Shown here piece by piece: positions 37,565 to 55,196 of a stretch of DNA of 64,000 nt; the stretch's first letter is position 1, and the number at the start of each line of letters is the position of its first letter. The DNA lies in sequence record ON529857.1; one strand, given 5' to 3'. The position numbers and the translations under genes were made by a program. A model generated the notes under the pieces. It ran no database searches. It saw nothing but the letters and a program-made list of their open reading frames with translations, and was not told the DNA's origin.

Positions 37565-37690
37565 GTCACGAAGTTCTGGATTCGTGACAGGGGGTTTTGG
37601 GGGCGTGAGTCATGATTCAAGGGATTCGTGACTCGTTTGGAGCGGCGGCCGGCCCGGTTTTCGTGACTCGGGCCGGAATTTCGTGACTCA
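37565..37690. repeat. TCGTGAC(TC) cluster with GTCACGAA-N8-TTCGTGAC palindrome and 7 GANTC sites
   Basis: GANTC at 37579, 37607, 37614, 37623, 37630, 37665, 37685. Confidence 0.8.
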
Positions 37691-38632
37691 GTCCTCGTCG
37701 CCGGGGTCGAACGGGTCGGCCCATTGGGTGGTGACGGTCAGCATCCCTTCATGCCCGTAGAACTCATAAGAGTGGCCCGGCTTGAGGTCGAAGCTGGGGA
37801 AGGCGTCGATCTGCTTGATCAGGTCGGCGGAACCGGCGACGTGCGCGGCGATAGCGGCGTCTTGTGCGAACAGGCGGCGCAGGATCGCCTGCACCTGCTC
37901 GGGCGTGTCGGCGTAACGCGGCGAGACCGCCGGGGATTCGCGGTGGATGCGGTAGCGACGCGCGCGGACCTTGATCTCGAACGGGCCAGCCCAGGCGCGC
38001 ACTTCCGCCGGGGCGGCGGCGGCGTCGGACAGGGCGTCGAACGCCGTCAGGTCATGAGTCGCCACCGCGTCTTGAAACTCCGCGCGGGTGACGGGATAGG
38101 TCCAGCGGGCGTCGTCCACGTCCATGGCGTGGTCCATAATCATGGCCTGACCGGTGAAGATCGCCAGATAGGGGGCGGCTTCGTTGTTCAGCTCGGGCGG
38201 GTCGCGGTCCATCCAGAAGCGATAGAGGGCCGCCCAGGCGCGCGCTCTGTCGCGATCTCCCGTGTCCGGCTCGCAGGCCTCTTGCAAGGCCTCAATCGCC
38301 TGCGTGCGATCCGGCTGGTCGGCGTCCAGCTGGTCGCGCTGATGGGCGTCATAGGACAGCAGCACCGCGCAGGTGAAGCGGGCGTCCCACTCGCCGGCCG
38401 GGCCTGCCGCCAACGACTCGCGCACCTCGGGATGCGTGATGTGGGAAAATTCGGAAGGGTCCCCGGCGGTGAATTCGGAAGGGTCCCCGGCCGAAAATTG
38501 CGAAGGGTCCCCGGCGTTGATTTCAGCAGGGTCCCCCGACTCGATTCGGTCGGCCTCCCTCGTCAGCGTAGCGGCCTGCGCCAACAGGGTGGCGGCGGCG
38601 GCGCGCATGACGGCGGCGGATGTCAGTCTCAT
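37688..38632 (-). CDS. hypothetical protein with N-terminal AGDPSEF repeats
   Basis: 314 aa; repeats encoded by the GGGTCCCC DNA repeat. Confidence 0.75.
   Translation of the reverse strand: MRLTSAAVMRAAAATLLAQAATLTREADRIESGDPAEINAGDPSQFSAGDPSEFTAGDPSEFSHITHPEVRESLAAGPAGEWDARFTCAVLLSYDAHQRDQLDADQPDRTQAIEALQEACEPDTGDRDRARAWAALYRFWMDRDPPELNNEAAPYLAIFTGQAMIMDHAMDVDDARWTYPVTRAEFQDAVATHDLTAFDALSDAAAAPAEVRAWAGPFEIKVRARRYRIHRESPAVSPRYADTPEQVQAILRRLFAQDAAIAAHVAGSADLIKQIDAFPSFDLKPGHSYEFYGHEGMLTVTTQWADPFDPGDED
38445..38540. repeat. AATTCG-N-AGGGTCCCCGG repeat cluster B
   Basis: Four copies, ~23-bp period, inside CDS. Confidence 0.9.
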
Positions 38633-38771
38633 GGGCGGGTCTCCGTGTTCTCGATGCCGGCACCGTAAAGGGCGCCCACTGGAGTGTCAACCTCTTTTCT
38701 TCAGAGAAGTCTGCGGCGAGCGTTAACCCTAATGAGTTGTTAAGGTTAATGTAAACCGGTCGCAAAAGAAA

Positions 38772-38831
38772 GCGCCCGCCGGGGGAGACAGACCCGGCGG
38801 GCGCGACTGACGGGGAGACAGGCCGTCAGTC
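38772..38831 (-). terminator. tandem hairpins with UGUCUCC loops; second is the terminator
   Basis: GACUGACGG-CCUGUCUCC-CCGUCAGUC then CGCCCGCCGGG-UCUGUCUCC-CCCGGCGGGCG-CUUUCUUUU; repeated at 39989-40051 and 40936-40998; single copies at 47137, 48841, 52279. Confidence 0.85.
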
Positions 38832-39248
38832 TATCAGGTAGCGCCCCAGACCGGCGGTCGGCACCTCGGCGCCGTCGCGGTAGGCGACAGACCCCAGCAT
38901 CCCGAAGACGGCGTTACGGTCGCCCCGGTCGTATTCGGCGGCCTCGAACCGGCGCAGGATCGTCGGTTGGGCGGCGAAGCGGACATTGCGCGCATAGGGG
39001 TCGAGGTGCTTGTCCTGACCGGTGAAGAGGAACCATCCCCGTTCATGGGTGCCGCCGCCCAGCCAGCGGCGCTTGCGGCTGATGTGGATTTCGCGGTCGC
39101 CGTTGCCCGCCGTCACCCAGACGGTGCGGCCCGGCAGGGCCAGCGACAGTTCCCGCAAGGCTTCGTGCATCATGTCGCAAGTCAGGTCGAACAGCGCGTC
39201 CTCGGCGTCCTCGACCGCCTTCAGGGCTTGGGTGAAAACGTCGCTCAT
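38826..39248 (-). CDS. hypothetical protein
   Basis: ATGA overlap. Confidence 0.7.
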   Translation of the reverse strand: MSDVFTQALKAVEDAEDALFDLTCDMMHEALRELSLALPGRTVWVTAGNGDREIHISRKRRWLGGGTHERGWFLFTGQDKHLDPYARNVRFAAQPTILRRFEAAEYDRGDRNAVFGMLGSVAYRDGAEVPTAGLGRYLID

Positions 39249-39865
39249 GCCTTGGAGGCCTCAATGAGGGCCTGTTGCGCCTTCAGCGGCATACGATCCC
39301 AATCCTCGCTGGACAGGTCATAGGCCGCCATGGCGCGCTCGGCGTCGTCATACTCCGCCTCGATCTCCTCATTACGGCGAAGCTGAATGGCGGCGCGGCG
39401 CGCTTCGTCCGCGAGATTATCCAGCAGATATTTCAGGTCCACGTCCAGAACCCCGTTGCCGCGCAGCCAGGCGACGACGCGATCAAAGGCGGCGATCTCG
39501 CCTTGAGCCTCTTGCGGCGTCAGGTCGTCCAGCCGGGCGTCGTGGTTGAGGGCCGATTCGTTCACCATCCAGACCAGAGCCTCCAGCAGGGCGTCGTCCG
39601 CCAGCATGGTGGGGCGCATCAGGGTCCGGCCGTCCGCCTGCTCAACGTCGAAGGTCGAGACGCCGGCTTGCAGGTAGTCGGTGAACTCCGGCATGACCGT
39701 CCAGCCGCCGTCCGACAGGTGGGTTTCGTGCGCGATGGAGGCCAGGGCCTTGTCGCGGGCTTCCTGCGGCGTCTCGGCCTCGACGGCGATGGTCTTGCAG
39801 GCGGTCAGGTGGGCATAGGCCGTCACCAGATAGTTGATCCGAACGGAACTGCGGGCGGTGGTCAT
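39245..39865 (-). CDS. hypothetical protein
   Basis: V.VEAETPQEA motif; cassette RBS. Confidence 0.75.
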   Translation of the reverse strand: MTTARSSVRINYLVTAYAHLTACKTIAVEAETPQEARDKALASIAHETHLSDGGWTVMPEFTDYLQAGVSTFDVEQADGRTLMRPTMLADDALLEALVWMVNESALNHDARLDDLTPQEAQGEIAAFDRVVAWLRGNGVLDVDLKYLLDNLADEARRAAIQLRRNEEIEAEYDDAERAMAAYDLSSEDWDRMPLKAQQALIEASKA

Positions 39866-40045
39866 GGGGTGTCTCCCGTTGCTGTTGCGTTCGTTCTAGG
39901 TCGCCGATTGTGAGGTGTCAACCGTTTTTCTACAGAAAATAGCGCACCGGTTTCTGTTAAGGTTAATGCGAACCGAACGCAAAGAAAACGCCCGGCCGGG
40001 GGAGACAATCCCGGCCGGGCGTGGGGCTGACGGGGAGACAGGCCG

Positions 40046-40813
40046 TCAGTCGGGGTCGCCGTAACGCTCGCCGCAGCGGCCGCAGGTCGTATCGCGGTGC
40101 AGGCGGCCCGGCTCGCCGATCCAGTCGTGCAGGCCCGCCTGACAGTCGGCGTCGAAGGCGATGGGGGTCAGTTCGTCGGCGAAGGCGTCTTCCTCCTCTC
40201 CGCCCGGCAGACGCACCCGATACATGGCTCCGACTTCGGGGTCGCATTCGTCATCACCCAGAGGGCGCACGATCTCGACGCGGGTTCCGGGGGCGACCGT
40301 CGCATCCGAAGCGGTCGAGGCGAACAGGGCGATTTCGTCACGCATGAACACGTCAGCCGTAACGCTGTCGATCACGCTGTATGCCCCGTTGAACAGACGG
40401 TCAGGGTCAATCATCATATGACCCGACCCTAAGAAAGCCTCGGCGGCTTCCACCGTGGCGAAGCGGGCGACGAAGGTTTCAGCCTCGCCGGGCGTCGGCT
40501 CGGGGTTCTGGAGCGTCACCAGCACCGGCAGGACAGACAGGCGTTCCGGCGTCGTGTAGCCATCGCCCAGGTCCATGATGGCCTCGGCGCTCGAATCCTC
40601 GATCTCGCAGCCCTCCAGCGAGCCGGGGTCGAGCAGGTGGCGCAGGCAGCCCGAAACGTCAGGGTTGGCGCGCGATCCCAGGAAGTCCGCGTATTCCGCC
40701 GGCTCCGCGTTGGGGTTGGCGTCGAGGTAGGCCGCCACGGCGGCGGCGTGCAGAGCACGCGGATCAAAGACCTTGAGGCTGATCGTCACGTCATAGGCGA
40801 TGCGGCTGGACAT
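40046..40813 (-). CDS. multi-domain hypothetical protein, C-terminal Cys/His cluster
   Basis: CQAGLHDW...CGRCG at end; cassette RBS. Confidence 0.75.
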   Translation of the reverse strand: MSSRIAYDVTISLKVFDPRALHAAAVAAYLDANPNAEPAEYADFLGSRANPDVSGCLRHLLDPGSLEGCEIEDSSAEAIMDLGDGYTTPERLSVLPVLVTLQNPEPTPGEAETFVARFATVEAAEAFLGSGHMMIDPDRLFNGAYSVIDSVTADVFMRDEIALFASTASDATVAPGTRVEIVRPLGDDECDPEVGAMYRVRLPGGEEEDAFADELTPIAFDADCQAGLHDWIGEPGRLHRDTTCGRCGERYGDPD

Positions 40814-40992
40814 AGGGTGTCTCCCGTTGGTGTTGAGACCGTTCTAAGGCGGCGGTTGTGGGGTGTCAACCGCTTTTTCACAGAAAAGTTCTGGAGGGGC
40901 GCGTTAAGGTTAATGCGAACCGGACGCAAAGAAAACGCCCGGCCGGGGGAGACAAGCCCGGCCGGGCGTGGGGCTGACGGGGAGACAGACCG

Positions 40993-41631
40993 TCAGCTTA
41001 GGGGTGCGGAGCCGTCCCAGCCCTCCGGCTGCGTGAACGGATCATCCAAGGCGCGCACCAGGACGGCGGCCTCGTCTTCGGTGATCTCGTCCGCGTTCAG
41101 GCGGTTGCAAATCACCTCGATCTGCTCCTGAGCGTGGGCGCTGATGACGGCGGCCTGCACGAAGTCGTCTTCCGGCTCGCCGCTGGCGTCAATGCGGTAG
41201 AGGCCGACGTGTTCGTTATCGTCGGTGCAGACGTGCCAGTCGTAGCGCAGGCGGGCGGGCAGTTCGTCTTCGGCCTCGGCCTTCCAGTTCTGCAAGCCGT
41301 TGACGGCGCCGGCGAGGTCGCCGCTCGACCAGTTGTCCACGACGGCTTGAGCGGCCTGGGCGCCCTCGCTGACCAGATTCAGCAGGTGCGCCGCCTGAGC
41401 GGTGGTCAGGACGATCAGCTTTTCGCCCCGGCCCATCGCCGCCTCGATCAGTTCGCAGGCGGTGGCGTCCTTCGGCGGCTCGGGCGGCAGAACCTTCAAG
41501 GCGTTCTGCACGTCGTTGAAGAGTTCTTCGTAATCGTCCAGCTCGGGCGGGACTTGGTTCTCCCGCATGGCGTTGTCGCGGGCGTTGGTGGTGAGCTGCA
41601 AGGACAGCAGGGCGTAATAGAGGGTGTTCAT
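40993..41631 (-). CDS. hypothetical acidic protein
   Basis: MNTLYY start behind cassette RBS. Confidence 0.75.
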   Translation of the reverse strand: MNTLYYALLSLQLTTNARDNAMRENQVPPELDDYEELFNDVQNALKVLPPEPPKDATACELIEAAMGRGEKLIVLTTAQAAHLLNLVSEGAQAAQAVVDNWSSGDLAGAVNGLQNWKAEAEDELPARLRYDWHVCTDDNEHVGLYRIDASGEPEDDFVQAAVISAHAQEQIEVICNRLNADEITEDEAAVLVRALDDPFTQPEGWDGSAPLS

Positions 41632-41776
41632 CGGGTGTCTCCGTGTTCGTGTTGAGACCGTTCTAGGGCGCCCGCTGTTCGGTGTCAACTACTTTTTCGT
41701 AGAAATATTCCGCCAGCCTCATTAACCTTAACGCAAGCGGGTCGCAAAAACGCCCGGCCGAAGCCGGGCGTTCGCC

Positions 41777-42526
41777 TTAACCCTTGAGCGGGGGCAGGTA
41801 GTCGAGATCGACCATCGGCGGCTCGCCGTCCTTGCCGCTCTTGGCGGCTTGCAGGATGGATTCCATCAGGGTTTGGGTCGCCGTGCCGTCGCGCAGGCGG
41901 GCCGCCGTCGGGGACGATTCGACCTTTTCCGCATAGACGCCGGACGCAGCCTTCACCGCTTCCAGGCAAGCCTGCATCGCCGTTTGCGCGGTGCGGTGCG
42001 CTTCCGCCGCCGCCTCTTGCAACGCGGTCTTATAGGCGCCTTGGCCTTCCTCCGACATCTGCATCAGTCGCTCGCTTTCCTTCAGCATCCGCGCCGCTTC
42101 ATGGGCGGTAAGGGCGATGGCGTTGGGAAGTTCGTCGGCCGCCTTAGCGTAGAGCGTCAACAGACGCGCCGCCTCAACAGCGTCATCGGCATAGACGGCG
42201 CCGGCGTCCGACCAGTTGTTCGCCAGCACCGCCAGGGCGGCCTGAGCGGCGTAGTGCGGCAGGGTCGAGCCGCTTTCGAGGTCTTCCAGGCGCTGGGCCA
42301 GCCGCAGGGTCAGCGGATCGGTGTTCTGCGCCAGGGCCAGGGTCATGAACTCCGGCTGGACCTGAAACTCCGTGACGGAACCGTCGTCGTCTTCGTGCGT
42401 CAGGCCCTCGGCGCTCATGTAATGCTGCACGGCGAACTCCAGCGAGCGGCGCACATGGGCAGGGTCCACAGCGCCGCCTTCGACTTGCAGGGTGACGATG
42501 TAATTGATGGTGACGGGTGCGGTCAT
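41777..42526 (-). CDS. hypothetical protein
   Basis: 249 aa single-gene cassette. Confidence 0.75.
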   Translation of the reverse strand: MTAPVTINYIVTLQVEGGAVDPAHVRRSLEFAVQHYMSAEGLTHEDDDGSVTEFQVQPEFMTLALAQNTDPLTLRLAQRLEDLESGSTLPHYAAQAALAVLANNWSDAGAVYADDAVEAARLLTLYAKAADELPNAIALTAHEAARMLKESERLMQMSEEGQGAYKTALQEAAAEAHRTAQTAMQACLEAVKAASGVYAEKVESSPTAARLRDGTATQTLMESILQAAKSGKDGEPPMVDLDYLPPLKG

Positions 42527-42665
42527 CGGGTGTCTCCGGTGGTTGATCTGTCTCCCTTCTAGGCCGCCCGGTGTAAGGTGTCAACCACTTTTCTACAGAA
42601 AACTTCTCGTTAAGGTTAACGTGGGCGGGGCGCAAAAACGCCCGGCCGAAGCCGGGCGTTCAGGG

Positions 42666-43631
42666 TCAGGCGGGGATGTTGGAGAAGTCGGGGCTGTCGC
42701 CGTCCTGCGGCGTCACCTCGATCCACGACATGCGTTCCATGTAGCGCTTGACGGAGCCGGACGGCAGGCCGTTGAGGATGTAGAGCAGGGCGAGGCGTTT
42801 AGCCGCTTCGCTGGCGCGGGCGCTGATCCGGGTGCAGTAGGAGGAATCCTCCACATACTCCCAGGCGCCGTCCGCCCCCTTGCGCTCGACCGAGACCCGC
42901 ATCAGGGGTTCATCACCCGGATCGGTCTGGTCATAGTCTCCGTCCGCCCCTTCCCCGATGTATTCCAGCATCACCGCGTCGTCGCCGTTTTCTTCGCGCA
43001 GTTCGGGCGCGTCGAACGGCTCCGCTGAGCCGGGCACATCAGGCAGGAACTCCGAAGCGGCGGCCGCCCAATCTTCCAGAATGGTCGAGGCTTCAACCAT
43101 GGACGTTCCCGCCTGCCGGGCGTCGGTCAGCGCCTGGATCGACTCGACCGCCGATTCGACAGCCCTCAGCAGCGGGCGCGTCAGAGGGTCCGTCACCAGG
43201 GCGTCGGCCGCGTCATCGTGCGACAGGCGTTGGATCGGCCCCGCCGTTCCAGCGCGATAGAGATAGACGGCGCGGCCTTGATGACCGAATCCGTAGGCGT
43301 TCCAATGCGCGCCGACCACCTCGGCCGCCGCGCCGTGATCGCCATACACCAGCGTATCCGCCACGACGGCGCCGGAAGGGTCCGCCGCGACGACGCGATA
43401 CGCCGGCAGGGTGACGGTCTGCAAGTCGAACTCATAGTCGATGTCTTCCTCGCCTATCCAGTTGCTGATGGCGGCGGTGTCAGCCCCCACGTCTTCGGGC
43501 AGGCCGTAGGCTTGCAGTTCGCGCACCACGTCCGCCAGGGCGGCGGCTTCGGACGGGAAGAATTGAGCGCCCATGCCGTATTTGTTACGGGTGATGAGCA
43601 GGACGGTCGGGGCGAGGCTAGGCAGGGTCAT
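42666..43631 (-). CDS. multi-domain hypothetical protein
   Basis: 321 aa single-gene cassette. Confidence 0.75.
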   Translation of the reverse strand: MTLPSLAPTVLLITRNKYGMGAQFFPSEAAALADVVRELQAYGLPEDVGADTAAISNWIGEEDIDYEFDLQTVTLPAYRVVAADPSGAVVADTLVYGDHGAAAEVVGAHWNAYGFGHQGRAVYLYRAGTAGPIQRLSHDDAADALVTDPLTRPLLRAVESAVESIQALTDARQAGTSMVEASTILEDWAAAASEFLPDVPGSAEPFDAPELREENGDDAVMLEYIGEGADGDYDQTDPGDEPLMRVSVERKGADGAWEYVEDSSYCTRISARASEAAKRLALLYILNGLPSGSVKRYMERMSWIEVTPQDGDSPDFSNIPA

Positions 43632-43750
43632 CGGGTGTCTCCGGTGGTTGTTCTGCCTCTCTTCTAGGCCGGACGGCGTAGAGTGTCAACAGCTTTTCTT
43701 TAGAAAACTTCTCGTTAAGGTTAACGAGAACGGTTCGCAGAAAAGCCGGG

Positions 43751-43858
43751 TCAAGCGACCCGGCTCCACATCTGCTGCGCCAGCATGAAGAGATAGTAGA
43801 GGATGACGCCCGCCAGCATCAGCAGGGCCATCCCCAGGCGCGGCGCCCGCGCGGTCAT
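43751..43858 (-). CDS. small membrane peptide (not in ORF track)
   Basis: MTARAPRLGMALLMLAGVILYYLFMLAQQMWSRVA, ATGA overlap. Confidence 0.55.
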   Translation of the reverse strand: MTARAPRLGMALLMLAGVILYYLFMLAQQMWSRVA

Positions 43859-44409
43859 GCGCCGTCCGCTTCGTCTTCGTCGTCGTCTTCCGACGCCAGC
43901 CTGCCGTCATAGGCCAGAAGGTCGCCAATCGCCTCGTTGCCGCGTTCCGACAGAATGTCGTCCAGACGGCGGCGGTTGTTGACCAGCCAGTCGGCGGCTT
44001 CCTCTTCGGTGCCGTCGAAGCGGTCGATCACGTCTTCAACGGTGAAGACGGTCGGAGCGGCGCCGGCGAGACGGATGGCCTCGGTCAGGTCATAGACGCT
44101 GATCGCAACGTCGATGGCGTAGATGTGACCGTTGAAGCCGATTCGCTCTTCGGCGAACAGCACGATCTCGACGTCGGACAGGTCGTCCAGGGTCTTGATC
44201 TCGTCCAGCGGCTTTTGCGTGTGGATGTCGTAGTCTTCCAGCCCGCTTTGCAGCGACGTGGCGTCGGTATAGCGGCCCGCCATCCAGTCGCGCGCCTGCT
44301 GCGCCTTGGCGTCCTCGGCCTCGACTTCGGAGGCGTAGGGGGCGCCGTCCGGCTCGTAGCCGTTGGCGGTGACGGCCAGTTGATAGAGTTTGAGTTTCGC
44401 GGTCTGCAT
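43855..44409 (-). CDS. hypothetical acidic protein
   Basis: MQTAKL start behind cassette RBS. Confidence 0.75.
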   Translation of the reverse strand: MQTAKLKLYQLAVTANGYEPDGAPYASEVEAEDAKAQQARDWMAGRYTDATSLQSGLEDYDIHTQKPLDEIKTLDDLSDVEIVLFAEERIGFNGHIYAIDVAISVYDLTEAIRLAGAAPTVFTVEDVIDRFDGTEEEAADWLVNNRRRLDDILSERGNEAIGDLLAYDGRLASEDDDEDEADGA

Positions 44410-44546
44410 GGGGTGTCTCCCGTTGTTGGTCATCCCCTTCTAGGCCGCGCGGTCTTTTGTGTCAACTTCTTTTCTACAGAAAACTTTTCGTTAAGGTTAA
44501 TGCGAGCGGATCGCAAAACGCCCGACCGAAGCCGGGCGTCTGCGGG

Positions 44547-45020
44547 TCAGTAGGGGCGGGCGGCCTCGGGTTCGTCGTAGAGAATATCCAGATCATCGAC
44601 CGAAACGACGACAGACCCGCCGCAGTCAAGCGACACCTCCACGCGGGCGAACCCATCGGCGAAGGTGTCGGGCAAGATCGTGGTGATCTCGCCCCGGTCG
44701 GCATGGGTCGGCACGTCGCAGCGGTCGCCCGCATCCCAGCCCTTGGTCTCGTTCTCGTCCGCGTCGTCTTCGCCGTCGTCGATCAGGGATTCGACCTCGC
44801 GCAGGCCGTTGGCCCAGGCGGTGACGGCTTCGACGTTATCCCCCAGGACATGAACGCCCTGGCCCCACTGTTGATAGGAGCCTTCATAGTAGGAGGCGAA
44901 GACGCGCAGGTCGTCCCCCTGCCGGTCGCGGCGGATGAAGACGATGTCGGCGCCCTTGCCGACGCCTTCGGTCAGCTCTTCGACGGTCGGGGCGCGAAAC
45001 TCGATCAGCTTGGTGGTCAT
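44547..45020 (-). CDS. hypothetical acidic protein with C-terminal SH3-like part
   Basis: MTTKLI start. Confidence 0.75.
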   Translation of the reverse strand: MTTKLIEFRAPTVEELTEGVGKGADIVFIRRDRQGDDLRVFASYYEGSYQQWGQGVHVLGDNVEAVTAWANGLREVESLIDDGEDDADENETKGWDAGDRCDVPTHADRGEITTILPDTFADGFARVEVSLDCGGSVVVSVDDLDILYDEPEAARPY

Positions 45021-45157
45021 GGGGTGTCTCCCGTTGTTGGTCATCCCCTTCTAGGCCGGGCGTGGTGGTGTGTCAACCTCTTTTTGGTAGTTATTCATCC
45101 GTTAAGGTTAACACAAGGGGGGTTCGCAAAAAGCCGGGATTGCTCCCGGCCTTCGCC

Positions 45158-45829
45158 TCAGTGGGACAGGGCGGCGTAGAAGGTGTGATCCTGCGGAACC
45201 GCCACCGTGACAGAGCCGAACTCGATTTCGAGCGCCTTGCGGTCGGGCGTCAACCCGATGCCCGTCACGACCGCCAGATCATCATAGAAAAGCTGCGCAG
45301 CGGTCTCGACCTCGGCGTCCGGCGTGTCCAGGCGGTTCGCATATTCGTCGTTGGCGAGGTTGATCCGCATCCCCGTCATGACCGCGTAAGCCTTGACCGG
45401 GATCAGGCCCTGATCGACCGCCTCGCACATATCCATCATGGATTCGCCGACCCGCACCAGTTCGGCGACCGACAGGAAATTGGGGCGGTCCTCGCCTTCG
45501 ATGTTCGAGACCCCTTCCAGATTCGCCAGCATGGCGCCGATGTCCCACATCGCGCCTTCCTCGGAGGCGACCACAGCCAGGGCGGCGGCCTTGGGGTCGC
45601 CCTCGACGCCGTTGGGGCCATAGCTGCGGCTGTTGGCGAAGTCCTCGTCGCCGGCCTCGTCCACCAGATAGCCGGTGATCTCCTCGGCGTCTTCGGCGGC
45701 CCTGGCCGCCAGGGCGGCGGCGCCGTCGAATTGGGCGGTCGCCTTGGCGATGGCCTCTTCATGCGAGGCGGCGGTCACTTCGACCGCGACGCGGGCGGTG
45801 AAATAGACGGTTACGCGGTGGGTGTTCAT
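45158..45829 (-). CDS. hypothetical protein
   Basis: MNTHRV start; VEVTAASHEEA; ITGYLVDEAGDEDFANSRSY. Confidence 0.75.
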   Translation of the reverse strand: MNTHRVTVYFTARVAVEVTAASHEEAIAKATAQFDGAAALAARAAEDAEEITGYLVDEAGDEDFANSRSYGPNGVEGDPKAAALAVVASEEGAMWDIGAMLANLEGVSNIEGEDRPNFLSVAELVRVGESMMDMCEAVDQGLIPVKAYAVMTGMRINLANDEYANRLDTPDAEVETAAQLFYDDLAVVTGIGLTPDRKALEIEFGSVTVAVPQDHTFYAALSH

Positions 45830-45967
45830 GGGCTGTCTCCCGTTGTTGGTCATCCCCTTCTAAGGCGGGGCGGGAGGGGTGTCAACCTCTTTTCTACAGC
45901 TATCTCGCTGTTAAGGTTAACGCAAGCGGTTCGCAAAACGCCCCGGCCGGAGCCGGGGCGCGCGTCT

Positions 45968-46282
45968 TCAGTAAGGCTCGGCGTTCCTGACGAAAATCAC
46001 CGCCGAGGGCGAACCTTCCTCGTCCTCTTCGTCAGAGTCCATCATGTCGATCAGGTCGCGGGTGTCCTTGGCGTTCTGGCGGTGTTGCTCCGCCACCTTG
46101 TCCCAGTTGCGGCTCGGGTCGGCTTCGTGGGCGGCGTCGAACTGGGCGGCGTAATCGTCGTAACGTCCAGCAGCGATCACCAGAGCGTGGCGCATGGTGT
46201 TCCGCTGCTTATCCACGAGGCGGTGGTGGGCGCCCTTGGCGATGATCAGGTCGCCGCGCGAAAAGGTGATGGGGTCTTGCAT
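45968..46282 (-). CDS. hypothetical protein
   Basis: Single-gene cassette. Confidence 0.7.
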   Translation of the reverse strand: MQDPITFSRGDLIIAKGAHHRLVDKQRNTMRHALVIAAGRYDDYAAQFDAAHEADPSRNWDKVAEQHRQNAKDTRDLIDMMDSDEEDEEGSPSAVIFVRNAEPY

Positions 46283-46333
46283 GGGTGTCTCCCGTTGGTG
46301 ATGCCCCCGTTATAGGCCGGGGCTGCGGGAGTG

Positions 46334-46660
46334 TCAACCACTCTTTTGCAGTTTTTCCTGTTCGTTGTAGTAGGTCAGCAGGGCCGCCGCATCCAAGGCG
46401 TTGCGGCGCGCCCCCTCGTCGTAGTTGCGCGACCACGACAGGCTGAACAGTTGGGAAACCAGTTGCTCCAGCGAGCCGTCCGCCGCCGGCGCCAGGCCGC
46501 CCTCATGGGCGCGCAGGACCGCTTCGGCTTCGGCCTGAACCGCTTCGGCGCGGGCCACCGCGTCGCAGTCGCGAGACCAGCCCGCGTCCAGCGTCAGAGT
46601 CGCGGTCACATCGTTCAGCGCCTGCGACAGGGCGCGGATCAGGGGCAGGGCGTCCTGCAT
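46334..46660 (-). CDS. hypothetical protein; stop codon lies in next promoter's TTGACA
   Basis: AGGAGG RBS. Confidence 0.7.
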   Translation of the reverse strand: MQDALPLIRALSQALNDVTATLTLDAGWSRDCDAVARAEAVQAEAEAVLRAHEGGLAPAADGSLEQLVSQLFSLSWSRNYDEGARRNALDAAALLTYYNEQEKLQKSG

Positions 46661-46662
46661 GG

Positions 46663-47022
46663 TCAGTCCTCCTGCCCGACTTCGGCGGCCTCGTTGGGGA
46701 AGGCGGCTTCCAGCGCCGCGACCAGAACCGGGTCACGCCCGCCGCGAATCACCCGCTTGATCGCGGCCGATTCGTCCTCGCTCGGGCCTTCTCCGCCCGT
46801 CATGCCGAAACGCACATTCCACGCATCGGCGATTTCTTGGGCGCCGGCGCGGGTCTCGTCCATGCCGTCCAGGGTGTAGTCGAAGGCCGACTCCAGGTGC
46901 TGGCCCTTGATCCAGAAGGCGGACGCGGCCGCGTCGGTGGTGTCCTCCCAGCCGCCGTCCGGGCCGTTCGGCTCATGGGTCGGCTGGACATAGTAGAAGA
47001 AAAAGGCTTGGCGCGGGATCAT
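46663..47022 (-). CDS. hypothetical acidic protein
   Basis: MIPRQAFFF start behind cassette RBS. Confidence 0.75.
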   Translation of the reverse strand: MIPRQAFFFYYVQPTHEPNGPDGGWEDTTDAAASAFWIKGQHLESAFDYTLDGMDETRAGAQEIADAWNVRFGMTGGEGPSEDESAAIKRVIRGGRDPVLVAALEAAFPNEAAEVGQED

Positions 47023-47227
47023 GGCGGGGCGTCTCCGTGTTGTTGCTCCCCTTCTAGGCCGGGCGCGGTGGTGTGTCAACCTCTTTTCGGTAGTTATTTA
47101 TCCGTTAAGGTTAATGCGAGCCGGACACAAAGAAAACGCCCGGCCGGGGGAGACAGGCCCGGCCGGGCGCTTCAGGCGGAGAGGATGCAGAAGGTGACGA
47201 AATAGAACCAGAGGCGGGCGGGCAAAC

Positions 47228-47602
47228 TCAAGCGGGCGGCCCCATCCGGCTGTCGACCCATTCCGGCCCCCAAGTGAGGATGCGCAGGCGATCCGCCATC
47301 GACTGAACCGCCAGGGCGCGGGCGGCGCGCACGTCGCCCTTCAGGGCGCGCGACGCCAGTTGCAGACAGAGATAGTTGTCGTCGATGAAACGATCCATCT
47401 CGTCCAGCTTCTCGATGCCGACGCTGAGCGCGGTCTGCGCCGTCAGTTCGGCGCCGCCGATGTTGAACACCGCCCAGCCTTCCGTGAGGTTGGTCTCGTT
47501 GTCCTTCTCGATGATAGCGGCGTATTCCTTCAGCATCCCCAGCAGGGCGTTGATGAGGACCACCTTGGGCATGTCGTCGATCTTCTTCATCTCAGTCCTC
47601 AT
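47228..47602 (-). CDS. hypothetical protein
   Basis: EGWAVFN...IEKLDEMDRF.DD motif. Confidence 0.7.
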   Translation of the reverse strand: MRTEMKKIDDMPKVVLINALLGMLKEYAAIIEKDNETNLTEGWAVFNIGGAELTAQTALSVGIEKLDEMDRFIDDNYLCLQLASRALKGDVRAARALAVQSMADRLRILTWGPEWVDSRMGPPA

Positions 47603-47957
47603 ACATGGCGTCGTTGAACAGGTCTTGCGAACCGGGATCGGTGAACTCCAGAATCGTTTCTTCGCGAATCGTCTGGGTCAGCACGGCGCGGCCGTCGTCG
47701 GTGGTGGTCGATTCGCTCTTGTAGGTCCGCAGGATCAGGCGGACATCGTCGAGCGACTTGAAGTCGCCGAAGACCACAGATTCGGGCCGGGCATAGACCA
47801 TCTGCCGGGCCTCGGGGCGGCGCAGCAGGGCGAGGCGCAGAGCCTTGGCCTCGAACGGCGCCAGCGGCTCCAGCATCGTGCGCTGTTGGCGGCTGGCGGA
47901 CTTGAAGCCGCCCCAGGCGTCGCCGACGACTTCAATGATCAGGGTGCCGTGGTTCAT
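47592..47957 (-). CDS. hypothetical protein
   Basis: MNHGTL start, ATGA overlap. Confidence 0.7.
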   Translation of the reverse strand: MNHGTLIIEVVGDAWGGFKSASRQQRTMLEPLAPFEAKALRLALLRRPEARQMVYARPESVVFGDFKSLDDVRLILRTYKSESTTTDDGRAVLTQTIREETILEFTDPGSQDLFNDAMYED

Positions 47958-48151
47958 GACGGCGCCCGATCCAGATTCATCCGCTTCGTGGTCGTGCGGG
48001 TGCGGCCGTCGTCGCAGGCGACGATGAAACGACCGGTGTCGGCGGGGACGCGCTTCAGGCGGCCCAGCCACGTCGGGGCGATGCCGTTGCGGTCGGGGCG
48101 GCCGTAAAGCCGCACCCGGTCGCCGGGGGCGAGGGTGGCGCGGGCGTCCAT
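47954..48151 (-). CDS. small SH3-like hypothetical protein
   Basis: LAPGDRVRL...G....F.VACDDG; TGATG overlap. Confidence 0.6.
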   Translation of the reverse strand: MDARATLAPGDRVRLYGRPDRNGIAPTWLGRLKRVPADTGRFIVACDDGRTRTTTKRMNLDRAPS

Positions 48152-48348
48152 CAGCGAATCGCCTTGGCGCGGATCGACTTTTCGGTGACTTCCTGCATGA
48201 AGTTGGCGGGGTTGGACATCAGATAGTTGCACTGATCGTTCAGCAGGGTCTTGACCTCGCGGCGCGCCTGCGCCCGGTTCATCCAGGCCGGCACCGTGAC
48301 CTTGACGGTGAATTCCAGTTCCTTGCGGCGTTTGATCGTCTTGGGCAT
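48151..48348 (-). CDS. small basic hypothetical protein
   Basis: Cassette RBS. Confidence 0.75.
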   Translation of the reverse strand: MPKTIKRRKELEFTVKVTVPAWMNRAQARREVKTLLNDQCNYLMSNPANFMQEVTEKSIRAKAIR

Positions 48349-48390
48349 GGGGTGTCTCCCGTTGTTTGATGGCTCAGGTGTAGCCCGGCG

Positions 48391-48729
48391 TCAGGCCGGT
48401 GTCAACTCCTCTTTTATACTATTTTTCGCCGCCTCGGCCAGGGCGGTGAAGCCCGCCTCCTTCAACGTCGCATAGAGGTGTCCGTGCAGATAGCGCAGGG
48501 TCGAGCGGCCGCGCATGATCGTGCGCACCACGCCCAGGGGTTCGCCCTTGCGGTTGCGGACGGTGATGATGATGGTGGTCTTTTCCGACCCATAGGGCGA
48601 CGGCAGTTCAGGGCCTTCCACCTGATACAGCACCTCGGCGCTCTGGCGCGGGGTCGTCAGGGTCAGGGTCTGGATGGCGCCCTTGATCAGGGTGTCGCCG
48701 TAAAGAAAGGTCATGCGGGCGCGAGCCAT
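48391..48729 (-). CDS. hypothetical protein; C-terminus read through next promoter
   Basis: Ends KNSIKEELTPA encoded by A-tract and TTGACA. Confidence 0.7.
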   Translation of the reverse strand: MARARMTFLYGDTLIKGAIQTLTLTTPRQSAEVLYQVEGPELPSPYGSEKTTIIITVRNRKGEPLGVVRTIMRGRSTLRYLHGHLYATLKEAGFTALAEAAKNSIKEELTPA

Positions 48730-48883
48730 GGGGTGTCTCCTCTGTTCGCCCTCCTTCTAGGCCGGGCGCGGCCGGGTGTCAACCCCTTTTCCGTAGTTAT
48801 GGGTTTGTTAAGGTTAACGCGAACCGCTCGCGAAAAATGCGCCCGGCCGGGGGAGACAAGCCCGGCCGGGCGCGGTCGGCGCC

Positions 48884-49237
48884 TCAGGCGTTGAGGTCGC
48901 CGTATTCGGTCCCGCATTGCAGGATTTCGCCCGTCTCGTCGCTGAAATGGATTTGATTCAGCCGCAGGAAGGCGCCGGTGCGGGCGTGGGGCCATTCGAC
49001 CTGACAGGTGAGCATATCGTCGAAGATCACCTTAGGCTCGCCGTATTGCGACCAGTCGATGCCGCCGCGCGCGTCAATCTCGCCCTTGGCGTCGGAGACG
49101 ATGCGATCCAGCACCGACCGGGCGATCCGGCCCGGCGCGCTCTTGATCCCATAGGCGCCGCGCCCGTTGTTGGCGAAGCTGTTCCAGTTGCTTTCGTCTT
49201 GAGTGTAGTTCTCGACGTCGATCTGTTCGTCCGTCAT
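48884..49237 (-). CDS. hypothetical protein
   Basis: 117 aa second gene of cassette. Confidence 0.7.
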   Translation of the reverse strand: MTDEQIDVENYTQDESNWNSFANNGRGAYGIKSAPGRIARSVLDRIVSDAKGEIDARGGIDWSQYGEPKVIFDDMLTCQVEWPHARTGAFLRLNQIHFSDETGEILQCGTEYGDLNA

Positions 49238-49241
49238 CGCC

Positions 49242-49625
49242 TCACTCCTTGTTGATGATCAGATAGCCCGGCACGTCGTCGCGGGCTTGCGGGCGCACCA
49301 CGAAGAGATAGAACCGGCCGTTGTGGGTGCGATTCTTGGCCTCGGCGGCGTCGCGGGTCGGATAGACCGACAGGCCCAGGGCGGGCAACCAGTCGCCGAC
49401 CCACGGCTCGTCGTTGAGCGTCAGCAGATACTGCTGCGGCAGGTCGTCCTCGTCGCGCTCGTCTTCGCTCTCGTCCAGATGCTCGACCTCCCACCAGCCG
49501 GCGCCGTGGGCGTCGCCCGAGGTGTAGCCCTCGCGAACCTGCCCGGCGATCATGTCCAGCACGTCCGCCAGATGATCGGCGGTCAGGGAGGCGCGGGGGC
49601 GGAAGGTGAAAACCGTGTTCTTCAT
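49242..49625 (-). CDS. hypothetical acidic protein
   Basis: L..IAGQVREGYTSG....GWW motif. Confidence 0.75.
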   Translation of the reverse strand: MKNTVFTFRPRASLTADHLADVLDMIAGQVREGYTSGDAHGAGWWEVEHLDESEDERDEDDLPQQYLLTLNDEPWVGDWLPALGLSVYPTRDAAEAKNRTHNGRFYLFVVRPQARDDVPGYLIINKE

Positions 49626-49784
49626 GTCGGGTGTCTCCGTTGTTCTGTCTCCCTTCTAGCCGGGGCGATTTCAAGTGTCAACCGCTTTTGTGTAGATAAT
49701 GCCGGAGAGACGTTAACCTTAACACCGCATTAAGGTTAATGCGAACGGGGCGCAGAAAGGCGGTCCGTCAGGACCGCCCTCGCG

Positions 49785-50357
49785 TCAGGCCAGATAGACC
49801 TTGCCGTCGTCGCCGATATAGACCCCGACCGTCCCGAAAGCCTCGGCGGCGGATTGCAGGGCCGTGCCGTGCGGCGAGGGCCAGCCGCCGTCGAAGAAAC
49901 CGGCGCCATGCCCGTTGCGGCTGCGCCAGAAGTCATGCCCCGCCTTGGGGCTGTCGATGTCGGGAAAGGCCAGCGTCGCCGTCTCGGGCATGGCCTCGGC
50001 GTAGGCGTCGAAGTCGCGCGTTCCCCGGAACAGGTCGCAGTCGGCGATGATGCGCGCCAGCGTCTCCGGCGCCAGGTCGGTGAAGCGGGCGGCGCGGAAG
50101 GACGGCGCGTCGGCGGGCTTGTCGTCGCACCACCATTCGGACTCGTTCAGGTCCGTGAGCATCCAGTCCCAGGCGCCGTCGCTGCGCGTCTGCGGGGCGA
50201 GACTCCAGCCTTGAAACAGGGCGATGATGTAGCCTTGGGTGAAGGCGTCAAGGTCGCGATCCCACAGATAGACGTTTGACGCCTTCGGCGCCCAGGAAAC
50301 GGGCGGATCAAGCGGGATGCAAACCTCTCCGGTGGTGTCGAGTATGAGTTCCGGCAT
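49785..50357 (-). CDS. hypothetical protein with GHDFWRSRNGHGAGFFDG domain (paralogue of 36262..36882)
   Basis: MPELIL start behind GGAGAC RBS. Confidence 0.8.
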   Translation of the reverse strand: MPELILDTTGEVCIPLDPPVSWAPKASNVYLWDRDLDAFTQGYIIALFQGWSLAPQTRSDGAWDWMLTDLNESEWWCDDKPADAPSFRAARFTDLAPETLARIIADCDLFRGTRDFDAYAEAMPETATLAFPDIDSPKAGHDFWRSRNGHGAGFFDGGWPSPHGTALQSAAEAFGTVGVYIGDDGKVYLA

Positions 50358-50367
50358 GGGGCGTCTC

Positions 50368-50571
50368 CTACAGGGCCAGGGCGGCGTCGAAGGCCGCCGA
50401 TTGCAGTTTCTTGGCGGCTTCGGCTTCGCGGGGGTGCCGCTGCGCCAGACCGTCAAAGCGTTCTTTCTGGTGCGACCGCTCGCCGTCAGCGGTGGTCATG
50501 TTCATCACCTCGCCCCACAGGTGGGCCATTTCGAGGATTAGGACGGAACGGCGGGAAGCGTTCATATACAT
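50368..50571 (-). CDS. small hypothetical protein
   Basis: Cassette RBS. Confidence 0.7.
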   Translation of the reverse strand: MYMNASRRSVLILEMAHLWGEVMNMTTADGERSHQKERFDGLAQRHPREAEAAKKLQSAAFDAALAL

Positions 50572-50642
50572 CGGGTGTCTCCGGTTGCGGTGGTTCTGTA
50601 GTAGCCCGCCGCAACCGGAGTGTCAACCGTTCTTTTTCAGAA

Positions 50643-51119
50643 TCAGCACCGCCGCAACATTTCGCGCGTCAAGGCTTCTTCCTGGCGGGCGATGTCAATC
50701 GCGGCGCGCTCATTCGCCTTGGCGTGGGCGCTGGCGGCCTGTTCCTGACAGATGGCCTGACGCCGGCGAATCTCATTGGTCGAAAGGGTGCGGAACAGGA
50801 CGTCGGCGTCCTGATCGACCTTGACGGTCCAGTGCTGCGCGGATTCATCGTCCGACCGCAGGTGCGGTGGGAAATAGATGTCCGCCACGTCCTGTTGAAA
50901 GAAGGTGCCGTCGCCGCGCATCTTGCGTTCCAGGTCCGCCACCTCGGCGGGCGCGATCTCGTCGATTGAGAAGGTCACGCTTTCGCCCAGGCCGTCGCCC
51001 TCGTCGATGAAATGGCCGATCTGCCCCAGCGACATACGCTCGACGGCGTGAACGTCTTCGGGCGTATGGGCCGTGTGCAGAACCGTCACGGTGATGACGG
51101 TGCGGATGATCTGAGGCAT
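50643..51119 (-). CDS. hypothetical protein
   Basis: Cassette RBS; SLGQIGHFIDEGD. Confidence 0.75.
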   Translation of the reverse strand: MPQIIRTVITVTVLHTAHTPEDVHAVERMSLGQIGHFIDEGDGLGESVTFSIDEIAPAEVADLERKMRGDGTFFQQDVADIYFPPHLRSDDESAQHWTVKVDQDADVLFRTLSTNEIRRRQAICQEQAASAHAKANERAAIDIARQEEALTREMLRRC

Positions 51120-51271
51120 GGGGGTGTCTCCCGTTGTTGTTCGCCGCCTGTGTAAGGCGGTCGAAAAGGAGTGTCAACCTCTTTTTCACAGAAAGTCGTC
51201 AACCTTAATGCGGTGTTAAGGTTAACGCGAACCGACCGCACAAAAGAAAACCCGGCCGAAGCCGGGTTCCC

Positions 51272-51604
51272 TCAGAAAGGTATGTCGGAGTCCAGCGCGG
51301 GCGCCGGCTCGACGGGGGCGGGCGGGGCGTTCAGGGCGGCGATGTAGGCCGCCTGCTCCGCCTCGCTCATGTCCCAGAAGGAATCATCTTCCGGGTGCGG
51401 GCCGCGCGGTCCCCGATAATGGGGGTTGCGCTCCCAGGTGTCGAACGGCGACAGCACATATTCGCTGTCCGGGTCGAGGCTTCCATAGGCCGAGACATAT
51501 TGAAACACCGCCTCGTTCATGTATTCCGCCTGTCCCATCGCCTCCTGCGCCAGGGCGTCCGCCTTTTCGCGTTCGTAGGCGTCGACTCGTTCCAGGTAGT
51601 CCAT
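51272..51604 (-). CDS. hypothetical acidic protein
   Basis: YVLSPFDTWERNPHYRGPRGPHPE motif. Confidence 0.75.
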   Translation of the reverse strand: MDYLERVDAYEREKADALAQEAMGQAEYMNEAVFQYVSAYGSLDPDSEYVLSPFDTWERNPHYRGPRGPHPEDDSFWDMSEAEQAAYIAALNAPPAPVEPAPALDSDIPF

Positions 51605-51624
51605 GTTCAGTTCTCCGGTTGAAG

Positions 51625-51633
51625 CTACTTCAT
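51625..51633 (-). other. two-codon minigene ATG AAG TAG behind AAGGAG RBS
   Basis: RBS 7 nt upstream; first element after cassette promoter 51699. Confidence 0.5.
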
Positions 51634-51800
51634 GGCGGTTCTCCTTGGGTTGGGGTTGCTCTCGTCTTGAGGCCCCACCATAGCAGGGCGGTTCAGGGTG
51701 TCAACACCTTTTTCGCAGAAAAATCGACGAGGCGGTTCTGTTAAGGTTAATGCGACCGGTGCGCAGATAGACCCCGGCTTAGGCCGGGGTCGTGTGCGCG

Positions 51801-52157
51801 TCAGCCGCCGAGGCGCTGGATGATTTCGTCATTCGACATCGTGTCCATCAGTTCCTCGACGCGGCGGGCCTTTTCAGCCTCGACCTTCTGGGCCGCCTCC
51901 TGCGCGCGGCGATATTCGGCCATCGCCGCCTTGCCCGCCTCGGTCGTCTCGGGATCGACGGTCATGTAAAGCGTGACCTCGCGGCCCTGGCGATCCACGA
52001 AGACCGGGCGCCCGGACGGCGTCATCGTCACGGTGAAATGGTGCTTGACCAGCCGATTGGCGGTCTCCATCCCGAAGTCGCCGCCGAAGCAGCCGCCGGC
52101 CGCCTTGACGGTGTGGTTTTTACGCAGACGGGTGTGATAGCCGATATTCTTGTGCAT
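51801..52157 (-). CDS. hypothetical protein
   Basis: Single-gene cassette. Confidence 0.75.
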   Translation of the reverse strand: MHKNIGYHTRLRKNHTVKAAGGCFGGDFGMETANRLVKHHFTVTMTPSGRPVFVDRQGREVTLYMTVDPETTEAGKAAMAEYRRAQEAAQKVEAEKARRVEELMDTMSNDEIIQRLGG

Positions 52158-52320
52158 GGGGTGTCTCCTCCCTTGATCTGTCCCAGGGTATAGCCGGGGC
52201 GGTTCTAGGTGTCAACCGCTTTTTCATAGAAAATGCCGGGGATGCGTTAAGGTTAACGCGAACCGCTCGCGAAAAATGCGCCCGGCCGGGGGAGACAAGC
52301 CCGGCCGGGCGCGGTTTGGT

Positions 52321-52947
52321 TCAGACGGCGACGTGCTTGCCGGTCTCGTCGAACCAATAGCCGTTGATCTGCAAGGTCTCGTTGACCGCCTCGTCGGAGG
52401 TTTCGGCCTCGTAAGCCTCGCGAAGCTGTTCCCAAATCCAGTCCATGTATCGGCGCAGGACGTCCGCCAGGGCGCGCTCCGTCTCGGGCGTCACGTCGCC
52501 GTCTTCGCCGAGGGTGACATGAATGTCCACGGACCCCGAATGGGTGTAGCGGTCGCGGTGGCTGATCTCCGCGCGCAGGGCGAAGGCGTTGTCCTGTTGC
52601 AGGGTGAACAGGTCGGCGGCGATTTGAAGCAGCTTCGCATCTTGCGGGGCCTCTTCCTTGAGCGCCGCGAGGGCGCCGGCCTTGAAGACGTAGCCGCCGG
52701 TGAAACAGGCGCCGTCGCCTTGGGTGTAGAAGCCGCTCCACAGGATGCGCGGGCTTCCGTTCCGTTCGGTGTCGATGGTGATTCCCATCAGGGCGGCGAA
52801 GTCGTCCGCCTCCTCCAGCACCGTGTCGGCGTAGTTGGTGTCCCCCGCCATCACCACGTCGGTGAACCACTGGCGGGCGGCCGCCTTGGCCTTCTCGGTC
52901 GGCAATTCGTCGATCTGATAGAGGGTGCGGGTCTGGGTCATGGGCAT
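52321..52947 (-). CDS. protein of the family often annotated 'antitoxin of toxin-antitoxin stability system' on plasmids/phages
   Basis: YQIDEL..EKAKAAARQW, WSGFYTQGDGACF, L..EY.Y..SDEAV.E....NGY.F.E.G motifs. Confidence 0.7.
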   Translation of the reverse strand: MPMTQTRTLYQIDELPTEKAKAAARQWFTDVVMAGDTNYADTVLEEADDFAALMGITIDTERNGSPRILWSGFYTQGDGACFTGGYVFKAGALAALKEEAPQDAKLLQIAADLFTLQQDNAFALRAEISHRDRYTHSGSVDIHVTLGEDGDVTPETERALADVLRRYMDWIWEQLREAYEAETSDEAVNETLQINGYWFDETGKHVAV

Positions 52948-53114
52948 GGCGGGTGTCTCCGTTGTTCTGCTTCCCTTCTAGCCGGGGCGGTCTCAGGTGT
53001 CAACCACTTTTTCACAGAAAATAGCAGGGCGGCGGCCATTAACCTTAATGGGGTGTTAAGGTTAATGCGAGCGGGTCGCAGAACGCCCCGGCTTCGGCCG
53101 GGGCGCATCGCGGG

Positions 53115-53645
53115 TCATCCCTCCCCGAAGTAGAAGGCGCCCAGCCACGTCCGAATCGCCTCGTCCTCTTCATAGGAGGTCGGGTAATCCGTCCACGGCG
53201 TCCCCCAGTCCTGATATTGCAGGCGGGCGTTCGACGGGTCGCCCCACGTCCCCAGCTCGCCGCGCAGGCGCAGCGCCGGGCCGCCGGTGCTCAGCAGGAT
53301 TTGAAACTCTTCGGCGCCGTCGCGGTCCTCGGGATCGCGCGGGCCGGGGTCGCGCCAGCCGTCGCGCACCTGAACCGACAGGACCGATTCGATGATCTCC
53401 TGACGCACGGCGTCCTTGTCCACCTCCTCGCCTTCGACCGGCTCGACGCTGTAGTCGTCCAGCCCCGCCGCCTCGGCGGCTTCCTCGGCCGCCTCTTCGG
53501 TCTCATAGGTGGCGCTCTCGTAGCCGTCCGCCTCGATCGTGTAGCCGATCGGCTCGGGCGTGTCGTCGGCGGCGTTCAGCTTGGCGGCCTGCTCCACGAT
53601 GGTGGAAAGCCAGGCGGCGGCGTTGCCTTTAGCGTGTTCGCTCAT
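53115..53645 (-). CDS. hypothetical acidic phage protein
   Basis: ILLSTGGPA.R..G.L....A.LQYQDWGTPW motif. Confidence 0.8.
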   Translation of the reverse strand: MSEHAKGNAAAWLSTIVEQAAKLNAADDTPEPIGYTIEADGYESATYETEEAAEEAAEAAGLDDYSVEPVEGEEVDKDAVRQEIIESVLSVQVRDGWRDPGPRDPEDRDGAEEFQILLSTGGPALRLRGELGTWGDPSNARLQYQDWGTPWTDYPTSYEEDEAIRTWLGAFYFGEG

Positions 53646-54019: not shown

Positions 54020-54034
54020 GATTCGTCCTTTCGT

Positions 54035-55151: not shown

Positions 55152-55196
55152 GGGGCGTCTCCCGTTTCGGTGTTGAGCCTGTCTATCCGGGCGGCG

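Follow-up and report, generated by a model that had tools for sequence, protein, structure and literature searches.

The early region of Brevundimonas phage vB_BpoS-Kikimora (ON529857.1, 312,615 bp), a phiCbK-like jumbo phage of the Dolichocephalovirinae, encodes a set of hairpins at the 3' ends of its messenger RNAs whose loops display UGUCUCC, the reverse complement of the ribosome-binding site (RBS) GGAGACA that most of its early genes use. The stretch analysed, here called the window, comprises 64,000 nucleotides (nt), bases 248001-312000 of the record, which it matches at 100% identity, so that a window coordinate is the record coordinate minus 248,000. The feature is real, it is conserved in related phages and it is unreported. 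Judging from the sequence, we favour, tentatively and with less than even confidence, the reading that it is a terminator-embedded anti-RBS element whose action, whether in cis or in trans, is through RNA-RNA pairing.

The loop is normally the least constrained part of a terminator hairpin, whereas here it is the most conserved part and mirrors the phage RBS. Should pairing prove to be true, this would be a phage case of mRNA 3'-end regulation in which the terminator doubles as an anti-RBS regulator, an arrangement known from few bacterial cases (icaR, RNAIII and cuckoo-type small RNAs, sRNAs) and undescribed for phiCbK-like jumbo phages. It would also offer a simple handle on early-gene translation in a group of phages with early genes almost all of unknown function. 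Should it prove to be untrue, what is left is still a well-defined, conserved RNA motif in need of a binding partner.

Hairpins with a shared loop in the early region

Between about 24 and 56 kb of the window lie some 45 minus-strand genes of unknown function, set out as near-identical cassettes. The order of elements in a cassette is stop codon, GC-rich hairpin, GCGAnCnGnUCGC, (A/G)TTAACCTTAAC (frequently with an inverted copy), TTTTCTGnAGAAAAG, GTTGACAC, about 17 nt, CTAGAAG and finally AACAACGGAGACACCCC-ATG. GGAG precedes 60 minus-strand starts over the whole window, in the form GGAGACA at 31 and GGAGACG at nine, in agreement with the initial annotation of this DNA, which was made from the sequence alone and named (G)GGAGACA as the usual cassette RBS. 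GGAGACA is found 44 times in the window (6.8 +/- 2.5 expected), 33 times on the minus strand and 11 times on the plus strand. All but one of the 33 minus-strand copies are in the early region, nearly all of them 4-7 nt ahead of a start codon, and the remaining one is the RBS of the major capsid gene.

Nine of the plus-strand copies fall between 38.7 and 52.3 kb, at 38784, 38814, 40001, 40034, 40948, 40981, 47149, 48852 and 52291, where about 0.7 would be expected on the plus strand in 13.5 kb. These positions had been listed in the initial annotation and are exact; when the minus-strand RNA is folded, all nine lie, as it had claimed, inside the loop of a stable hairpin (z = -3.7 to -7.3), the loop being 9 nt long with the sequence NNUGUCUCC. 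The final seven bases of this loop, UGUCUCC, are the reverse complement of GGAGACA (core GUCUCC against GGAGAC), and the computed cost of making the 7-mer single-stranded is about 0.05 kcal/mol. The loops are real and single-stranded, and their exact complementarity to the commonest RBS heptamer, the central claim of that annotation, stands.

The hairpins are of two types. Six of them, which we call T, have an unusually long GC stem of 12-16 bp, either CGCCCGGCCGGG or CGCCCGCCGGG with one pair fewer, and a U-tract right after it; with tails such as UUUUCUUUG or AUUUUUCG and a position 9-60 nt past stop codons, they qualify as intrinsic terminators. The other three, which we call S, have a CUGACGG stem that holds the UGA stop codon of the preceding gene, always stand directly 5' of a T hairpin and, having no U-tract, are not terminators alone. 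The tandem arrangement of S and T that had been described at three loci is present at 38772-38831, 39988-40049 and 40935-40997, and the other three loci have a single hairpin. S and T have in common only the loop and two closing pairs. It had also been claimed that the stems differ while the loop is kept; the quoted stems are correct, but an indel of one base pair is all that separates CGCCCGCCGGG from CGCCCGGCCGGG, which leaves two types rather than three. A 9-nt loop is confined to the six motif terminators, the other 23 terminator hairpins having loops of 3-5 nt (UUCG in ten). A generic promoter and terminator scanner was uninformative here: the -10 element is CTAGAAG-like, and the T hairpins were missed because the scanner allowed loops of only up to 8 nt.

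Since the nine copies come down to paralogues of just two modules, they are less independent than their raw number suggests, and that number is weak evidence alone. Conservation across phages, on the other hand, is independent evidence.

Conservation of the loop

The closest relative, Gurke (about 82% identical), has the same hairpins in the same places. Five relatives of 350 kb, Marchewka, Bambus, Papperlapapp, Kabachok and Domovoi, are about 70-75% identical in patches and have three motif loci each, with the loop UUGUCUCC and outer stems that vary (GCGCCCGCCGGG, GAGCCCGCCGGG, CGCGCCGCCGGG). In an alignment of 25 T hairpins from seven B. pondensis phages, GUCUCC, the next three C's of the stem and the six inner base pairs are invariant, while outer pairs 7 and 9-13 show compensatory changes and the flanks are unalignable. 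The initial annotation had looked to relatives for conservation of the loop, and it is there, in a setting of changing stems and flanks.

Comparison of the six orthologous spacers of Kikimora and Gurke gives the rate of change. The loop 7-mer is changed at 1/63 sites and the two remaining loop bases at 6/18; stem sites are changed at 7/196 and the remaining spacer at 199/815 (24%). The difference is significant by Fisher's test both between the 7-mer and the rest of the spacers (p = 1.3e-6) and between the 7-mer and the other two loop bases (p = 3.5e-4). When ordinary terminator loops were paired by hand, about 10 of 21 syntenic pairs differed. We conclude from this conservation that purifying selection acts on the loop sequence itself.

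At the locus upstream of a conserved 314-aa gene, at least one hairpin with the motif or its CGUCUCC variant is kept in every phage, even though individual hairpins have changed: the S loop is UGUCUUC in Bambus, a C-to-U change inside the motif, and a short pentaloop in Papperlapapp, and Kabachok and Domovoi have AUGCAC in place of the T loop and CGUCUCC in the S hairpin. Bambus aside, the motif shows a single kind of change, a C for the U of position 1, which occurs in four hairpins. This main tolerated change fits pairing, because CGUCUCC is the complement of the second RBS type, GGAGACG. A search for covariation of each loop with the RBS of the cassette it ends, or of the following cassette, found none at position 7. 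In Gurke, at 16063-16085, an orthologous S hairpin has degenerated to CUGAC-GCACCGUCUCCUA-GUCAG, with a 5-bp stem and a 13-nt loop, and retains CGUCUCC.

Outside these phages the element was not recovered. An exact-pattern scan of IMG/VR gave 14 matches on unrelated contigs, none with TTAACCTTAAC or a GGAGAC RBS on the right strand, which is chance level. A metagenome scan gave 49, none with the phage spacer motif, three of which are unrelated terminators with the same apex. A scan of GTDB genomes gave 55 matches over many phyla, none in Caulobacterales, with no trace of a host-derived copy; the single GTDB match with the spacer motif, on one Bacteroidetes contig, is taken as chance.

The RBS GGGAGACACCCC is shared by Caulobacter phage CcrBL9, whose cassettes are similar and which has 13 GGAGAC in 21 kb; phiCbK and Bajun have AAGGAG-type sites and no motif loops. 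From CcrBL9, where the RBS occurs without the loops, and from phiCbK and Bajun, it follows that the RBS is older than the loops and independent of them. As a separate observation, some of the terminators of CcrBL9 have short C/U-rich loops (UCCCC twice, GCUCUCCU and CUCACC), as do some of those of phiCbK (UCCCC and UUCCUCU); by their sequence, these could be weaker loops of the same kind, resembling an anti-Shine-Dalgarno (anti-SD) sequence.

Proposed pairing with the ribosome-binding site and its rivals

A role at the level of RNA is suggested because all nine plus-strand copies of the early region sit in loops, which would be unexpected of a role in duplex DNA. In the mechanism that we propose, the loop would pair with RBSs of the GGAGAC type and compete with the 30S subunit for them. 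It might do so in cis, at the 5' end of its own mRNA as in icaR; it might act on read-through RNA; or a stable 3' decay fragment might act in trans on other phage mRNAs, in the manner of cuckoo or RNAIII. A bolder version, that this jumbo-phage clade has built a cuckoo-like anti-RBS riboregulator into the terminators of some early mRNAs, whose 3' ends or stable decay products titrate the extended, phage-specific GGAGAC RBS common to its strongly expressed cassettes, seems to us doubtful. Titration by 3' ends would give an RNA-only feedback on phage translation, and the S hairpin, which bears the stop codon, would tie display of the loop to translation of the parent mRNA.

The predicted energies are consistent with pairing. 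Over 38 start regions, the predicted loop:RBS duplexes have energies of -11.0 to -15.6 kcal/mol (mean -12.6), shuffled loops of matched composition reach -8.35 +/- 1.23 kcal/mol, and a 16S tail, assumed to be canonical, gives -6.6 to -12.7 kcal/mol (mean -7.9). The loops are also complementary to their own mRNAs, as in icaR: all six motif cassettes of Kikimora start with (G)GGAGACA, a match of 7-8 nt, and three of the six in Gurke have GGAGACG, paired via wobble. In the 350-kb clade, a tally of RBSs finds GGAGAC followed by A, C or G in about equal shares.

Two 5' untranslated regions (UTRs) of Kikimora, at 42531-42555 and 49632-49652 on the minus strand, have a double GGAGACA 14-18 nt apart (for example, GGGAGACAGAUCAACCACCGGAGACACCCG), the copies at 42549 and 49646 being the second, more upstream ones; the Gurke orthologues have the same. 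These leaders are possible double targets of tandem loops.

Several observations weigh against pairing, or against its simplest forms. Of about 29 GC-rich intergenic terminator hairpins with a stem of at least 9 bp, no more than six have the motif loop. A protein that recognises a structured motif could likewise account for the six invariant inner stem pairs. In the 350-kb clade, the cassettes that own the terminators and those next downstream mostly have GGAGACC or GGAGACG, or GGGAGAGC, so that the match is only 6 nt (GGAGAC or GGGAGA) and the conserved loop U is unmatched. The initial annotation had the adjacent stem adding CC to the pairing; the two C's are present, but lengthening the duplex to GGGAGACA would cost +2.8 to +3.5 kcal/mol in opening for a gain of -3.3 kcal/mol, about as much as it returns. 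Read on the plus strand, the apex, CCGGGGGAGACAAGCCCGG, resembles the entire RBS region, CGGGAGACACCCC, and the complementarity of loop and RBS could partly reflect an origin by inversion of an RBS segment. In CcrBL9 there is no GUCUCC in 21 kb of sense RNA, so a co-dependence of RBS and loop is not supported. The major capsid gene has the RBS GAGGAGACAGCC, one of three GGAGAC-type sites among the 46 non-early genes of the window; the motif thus marks strong expression rather than early timing, which complicates a plain role in early shut-off. Finally, the Kikimora genome paper makes no mention of these motifs.

The main rival, which we nevertheless consider rather unlikely, is that the apical module GCCGGG-NN-UGUCUCC-CCCGGC, together with the S loop, is bound by a protein, for example a phage antiterminator, a stability factor or a nuclease, much as boxB is bound by N; the RBS complementarity would then be incidental, or left over from an RBS segment that was inverted. 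The inner stem pairs are invariant along with the loop, the loop U is conserved even though the RBSs of the 350-kb clade leave it unmatched, and these are the strongest terminators of the region and a natural place for regulated read-through. However, by a rough estimate, not a computation, an exact reverse complement of 7-8 nt to the top heptamer of the region would arise by chance with a probability of about 1e-3. Furthermore, S and T share nothing but the loop and two closing pairs, the tolerated U-to-C change suits the second RBS type, and the ten neighbouring proteins, when compared with Pfam and PHROGs, gave no function and no RNA-binding domain, most being of unknown function.

The initial annotation itself had proposed that stable 3' fragments of about 60 nt turn off the entire early regulon in trans and that GGAGACG cassettes are partly exempt. 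In its favour, tandem open loops with a U-rich tail resemble an Hfq-type sRNA, about 40 early RBSs are complementary and there is a sub-threshold resemblance to ar14 and sX13, which is taken up below. We judge it quite improbable in this form. The exemption is not borne out, given that the loop U pairs with G by wobble at a predicted loss of only 0.7 kcal/mol, and shut-down of an early regulon sits badly with an RBS that is not early-specific, the major capsid gene sharing it. In the 350-kb clade one third of the GGAGAC sites have C at position 7, and CcrBL9 has the regulon's RBS and none of the loops. No promoter motif was found within about 190 nt upstream of the hairpins, which start at the stop codon or right after it; a separate small RNA would therefore need processing or decay.

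Less probable still, and disfavoured, is the view that the loop has no function and belongs to a terminator-promoter spacer module that was spread by duplication and homogenised by recombination or gene conversion. The hairpins do lie within a repeated spacer module of about 180 nt, two copies of which are 97% identical over 94 nt, and the nine copies do reduce to two hairpin types. Yet the two neighbouring loop bases vary freely where conversion would homogenise them along with the 7-mer, so gene conversion cannot account for the kept 7-mer; the flanks of the paralogues are unalignable, their outer stems covary and the motif persists between clades that are about 70-75% identical. On the Kikimora-Gurke substitution pattern, both neutral hitchhiking and gene conversion are rejected. 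That the S+T modules were duplicated along with their genes was likewise not upheld, BLASTP having found no paralogy among the genes that precede the three modules.

It is very improbable that GGAGACA is a duplex-DNA site which some protein that binds or modifies DNA reads in either orientation, as the excess on both strands and the GAGAC/GTCTC within the heptamer might suggest; the idea was rejected, since the nine early-region plus-strand copies lie exactly in hairpin loops and the minus-strand copies stand at a fixed, RBS-like 4-7 nt from start codons. Inspection of the sequence also rejected a small plus-strand open reading frame (ORF) driven by an inverted RBS, there being no start codon at a usable spacing.

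Early-region features and known systems

The coordinates of the hairpins and of their proposed partners are collected in Table 1. The terminator labelled T' there has orthologous copies in Gurke, Marchewka, Bambus and Papperlapapp.

Table 1. Hairpins with the motif loop and their proposed pairing partners, in window coordinates (CDS, coding sequence).
Feature	Position	Strand	Basis
S hairpin, stem GACUGACGG/CCGUCAGUC including UGA stop of CDS 38826-39248, loop CCUGUCUCC	38805..38831	-	fold, sequence
T' intrinsic terminator, 12-bp stem GCGCCCGCCGGG, loop UCUGUCUCC, tail UUUCUUUUG	38772..38804	-	fold
S hairpin, stem CUGACGG including UGA stop of CDS 40046-40813, loop CCUGUCUCC	40027..40049	-	fold, sequence
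T terminator, 13-bp stem ACGCCCGGCCGGG, loop AUUGUCUCC, tail UUUCUUUGC	39988..40022	-	fold
S hairpin, stem GCUGACGG including UGA stop of CDS 40993-41631, loop UCUGUCUCC	40973..40997	-	fold, sequence
T terminator, 13-bp stem, loop CUUGUCUCC, tail UUUCUUUGC	40935..40969	-	fold
T terminator, 16-bp stem, loop CCUGUCUCC, closes operon 48729-47228	47133..47173	-	fold
T terminator, 13-bp stem, loop CUUGUCUCC, tail AUUUUUCGC, after CDS 48884-49237	48839..48873	-	fold
T terminator, 13-bp stem, loop CUUGUCUCC, tail AUUUUUCGC, after CDS 52321-52947	52278..52312	-	fold
Proposed pairing partners: 32 GGAGACA copies, consensus AACAACGGAGACACCCC-AUG, and GGAGACG variants	26956..55420	-	motif scan, start contexts
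GGAGACA RBS of major capsid protein gene (3316-4251), non-early	4256..4262	-	motif scan

Other features of the early region were seen alongside. The element (A/G)TTAACCTTAAC is in nearly all early spacers (window 24000-56500), in about 20 or more copies, frequently with its inverted partner GTTAAGGTTAAC; a short palindrome, GCGAnCnGnTCGC, precedes it and TTTTCTGnAGAAAAG comes after it. From their sequence, these spacer elements look like operators. At the -35 position the early cassettes of Kikimora and Gurke have GTTGACAC, whereas those of the five 350-kb relatives have a GTTAACCTCTTGTTAAC-like sequence of the form TTAA-N7-TTAA (Marchewka, about 15000-36500), which we take to be the CtrA box spacing; early transcription in these five phages may need the cell-cycle regulator of the host.

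Downstream of the conserved 314-aa gene is a non-coding stretch of 805 nt (window 36883-37687), with tandem repeats of the TTGACTTGACGCC...TTTCGATTTGAC type, with periods of 21 and 26, and several copies of GAGTCACGAA. A shorter array like it is found at window 26952-27297, and Marchewka has the same arrangement. By its sequence, the 805-nt array may be an origin of replication or bind proteins in some other role. At 37469-37543 on the minus strand, inside the long spacer, there is an unannotated hydrophobic ORF of 24 aa, MKALDSLFSAWKLLLACFVVMMFK; ORF ends that resemble it by eye are found in the spacer after CDS 55666-55965 and in Marchewka spacers. A 36-aa gene within the early region (28563-28673, minus strand) is annotated as an alternative ribosome-rescue factor (ArfA-like), an annotation that recurs in several relatives (Papperlapapp, Kabachok and Domovoi); as annotated, it is a translation-rescue function carried by the phage itself.

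The hairpin element belongs to no curated family. At gathering thresholds, Rfam gave no match in the whole window. In a relaxed search the best score for ar14/cuckoo (RF02344) was that of S+T', with 27.1 bits against a gathering score of 58.8, S and T' aligning with the second and the terminal hairpin of the family; weaker matches were to sX13 (19.5 bits) and 6C, both sRNAs with C-rich loops. Members of the cuckoo family have 2-4 adjacent hairpins with variable stems and the loop CCUCCUCCC (PMC4615179). Adjacent hairpins with variable stems and a common loop are found at the three S+T loci, and the phage loop is NNUGUCUCC instead of CCUCCUCCC. The analogy with tandem anti-SD hairpin sRNAs that was drawn at the outset is apt: as in cuckoo/ar14 of Alphaproteobacteria, adjacent hairpins carry one C/U-rich, anti-SD-like loop on stems with compensatory changes, and a terminator comes last. 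In contrast to cuckoo/ar14, the loop is UGUCUCC, it lies at the 3' end of protein-coding mRNAs and not in a separate gene, it is phage-borne, and it matches a phage-specific RBS extension rather than the generic SD.

The sRNAs CpxQ and SroC derive from 3' UTRs and share the terminator of their parent mRNA, the seed usually being upstream of that terminator. A phage fragment would likewise have to be processed from the 3' end of an mRNA and would keep that mRNA's terminator and U-tail, but with its motif within the terminator loop. In RNAIII, one of the hairpins that pair with an RBS is the terminator hairpin. C-rich hairpin loops pair with target RBSs in RNAIII and the Rsa sRNAs of Staphylococcus aureus, where they are UCCC loops, and in sX13 of Xanthomonas (PMC4615179). 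The phage element differs from RNAIII, the Rsa sRNAs and Xanthomonas sX13 in sequence, host and genetic context, and no homology to them was detected.

The nearest precedent in cis is icaR of S. aureus, in which the heptamer UCCCCUG of the 3' UTR pairs with the SD of its own mRNA, blocks initiation and creates a substrate for RNase III (PMC3868564). An interaction between the 5' and 3' UTRs is also reported for hbs mRNA of Bacillus subtilis (PMC5737220). Like these mRNAs, the phage transcripts have in the 3' UTR a C-rich anti-SD motif, the complement of their own SD. Unlike them, the phage element, known from sequence, places the motif in a terminator loop and in a stop-codon hairpin, repeats it in six cassettes and matches the RBS of nearly all cassettes.

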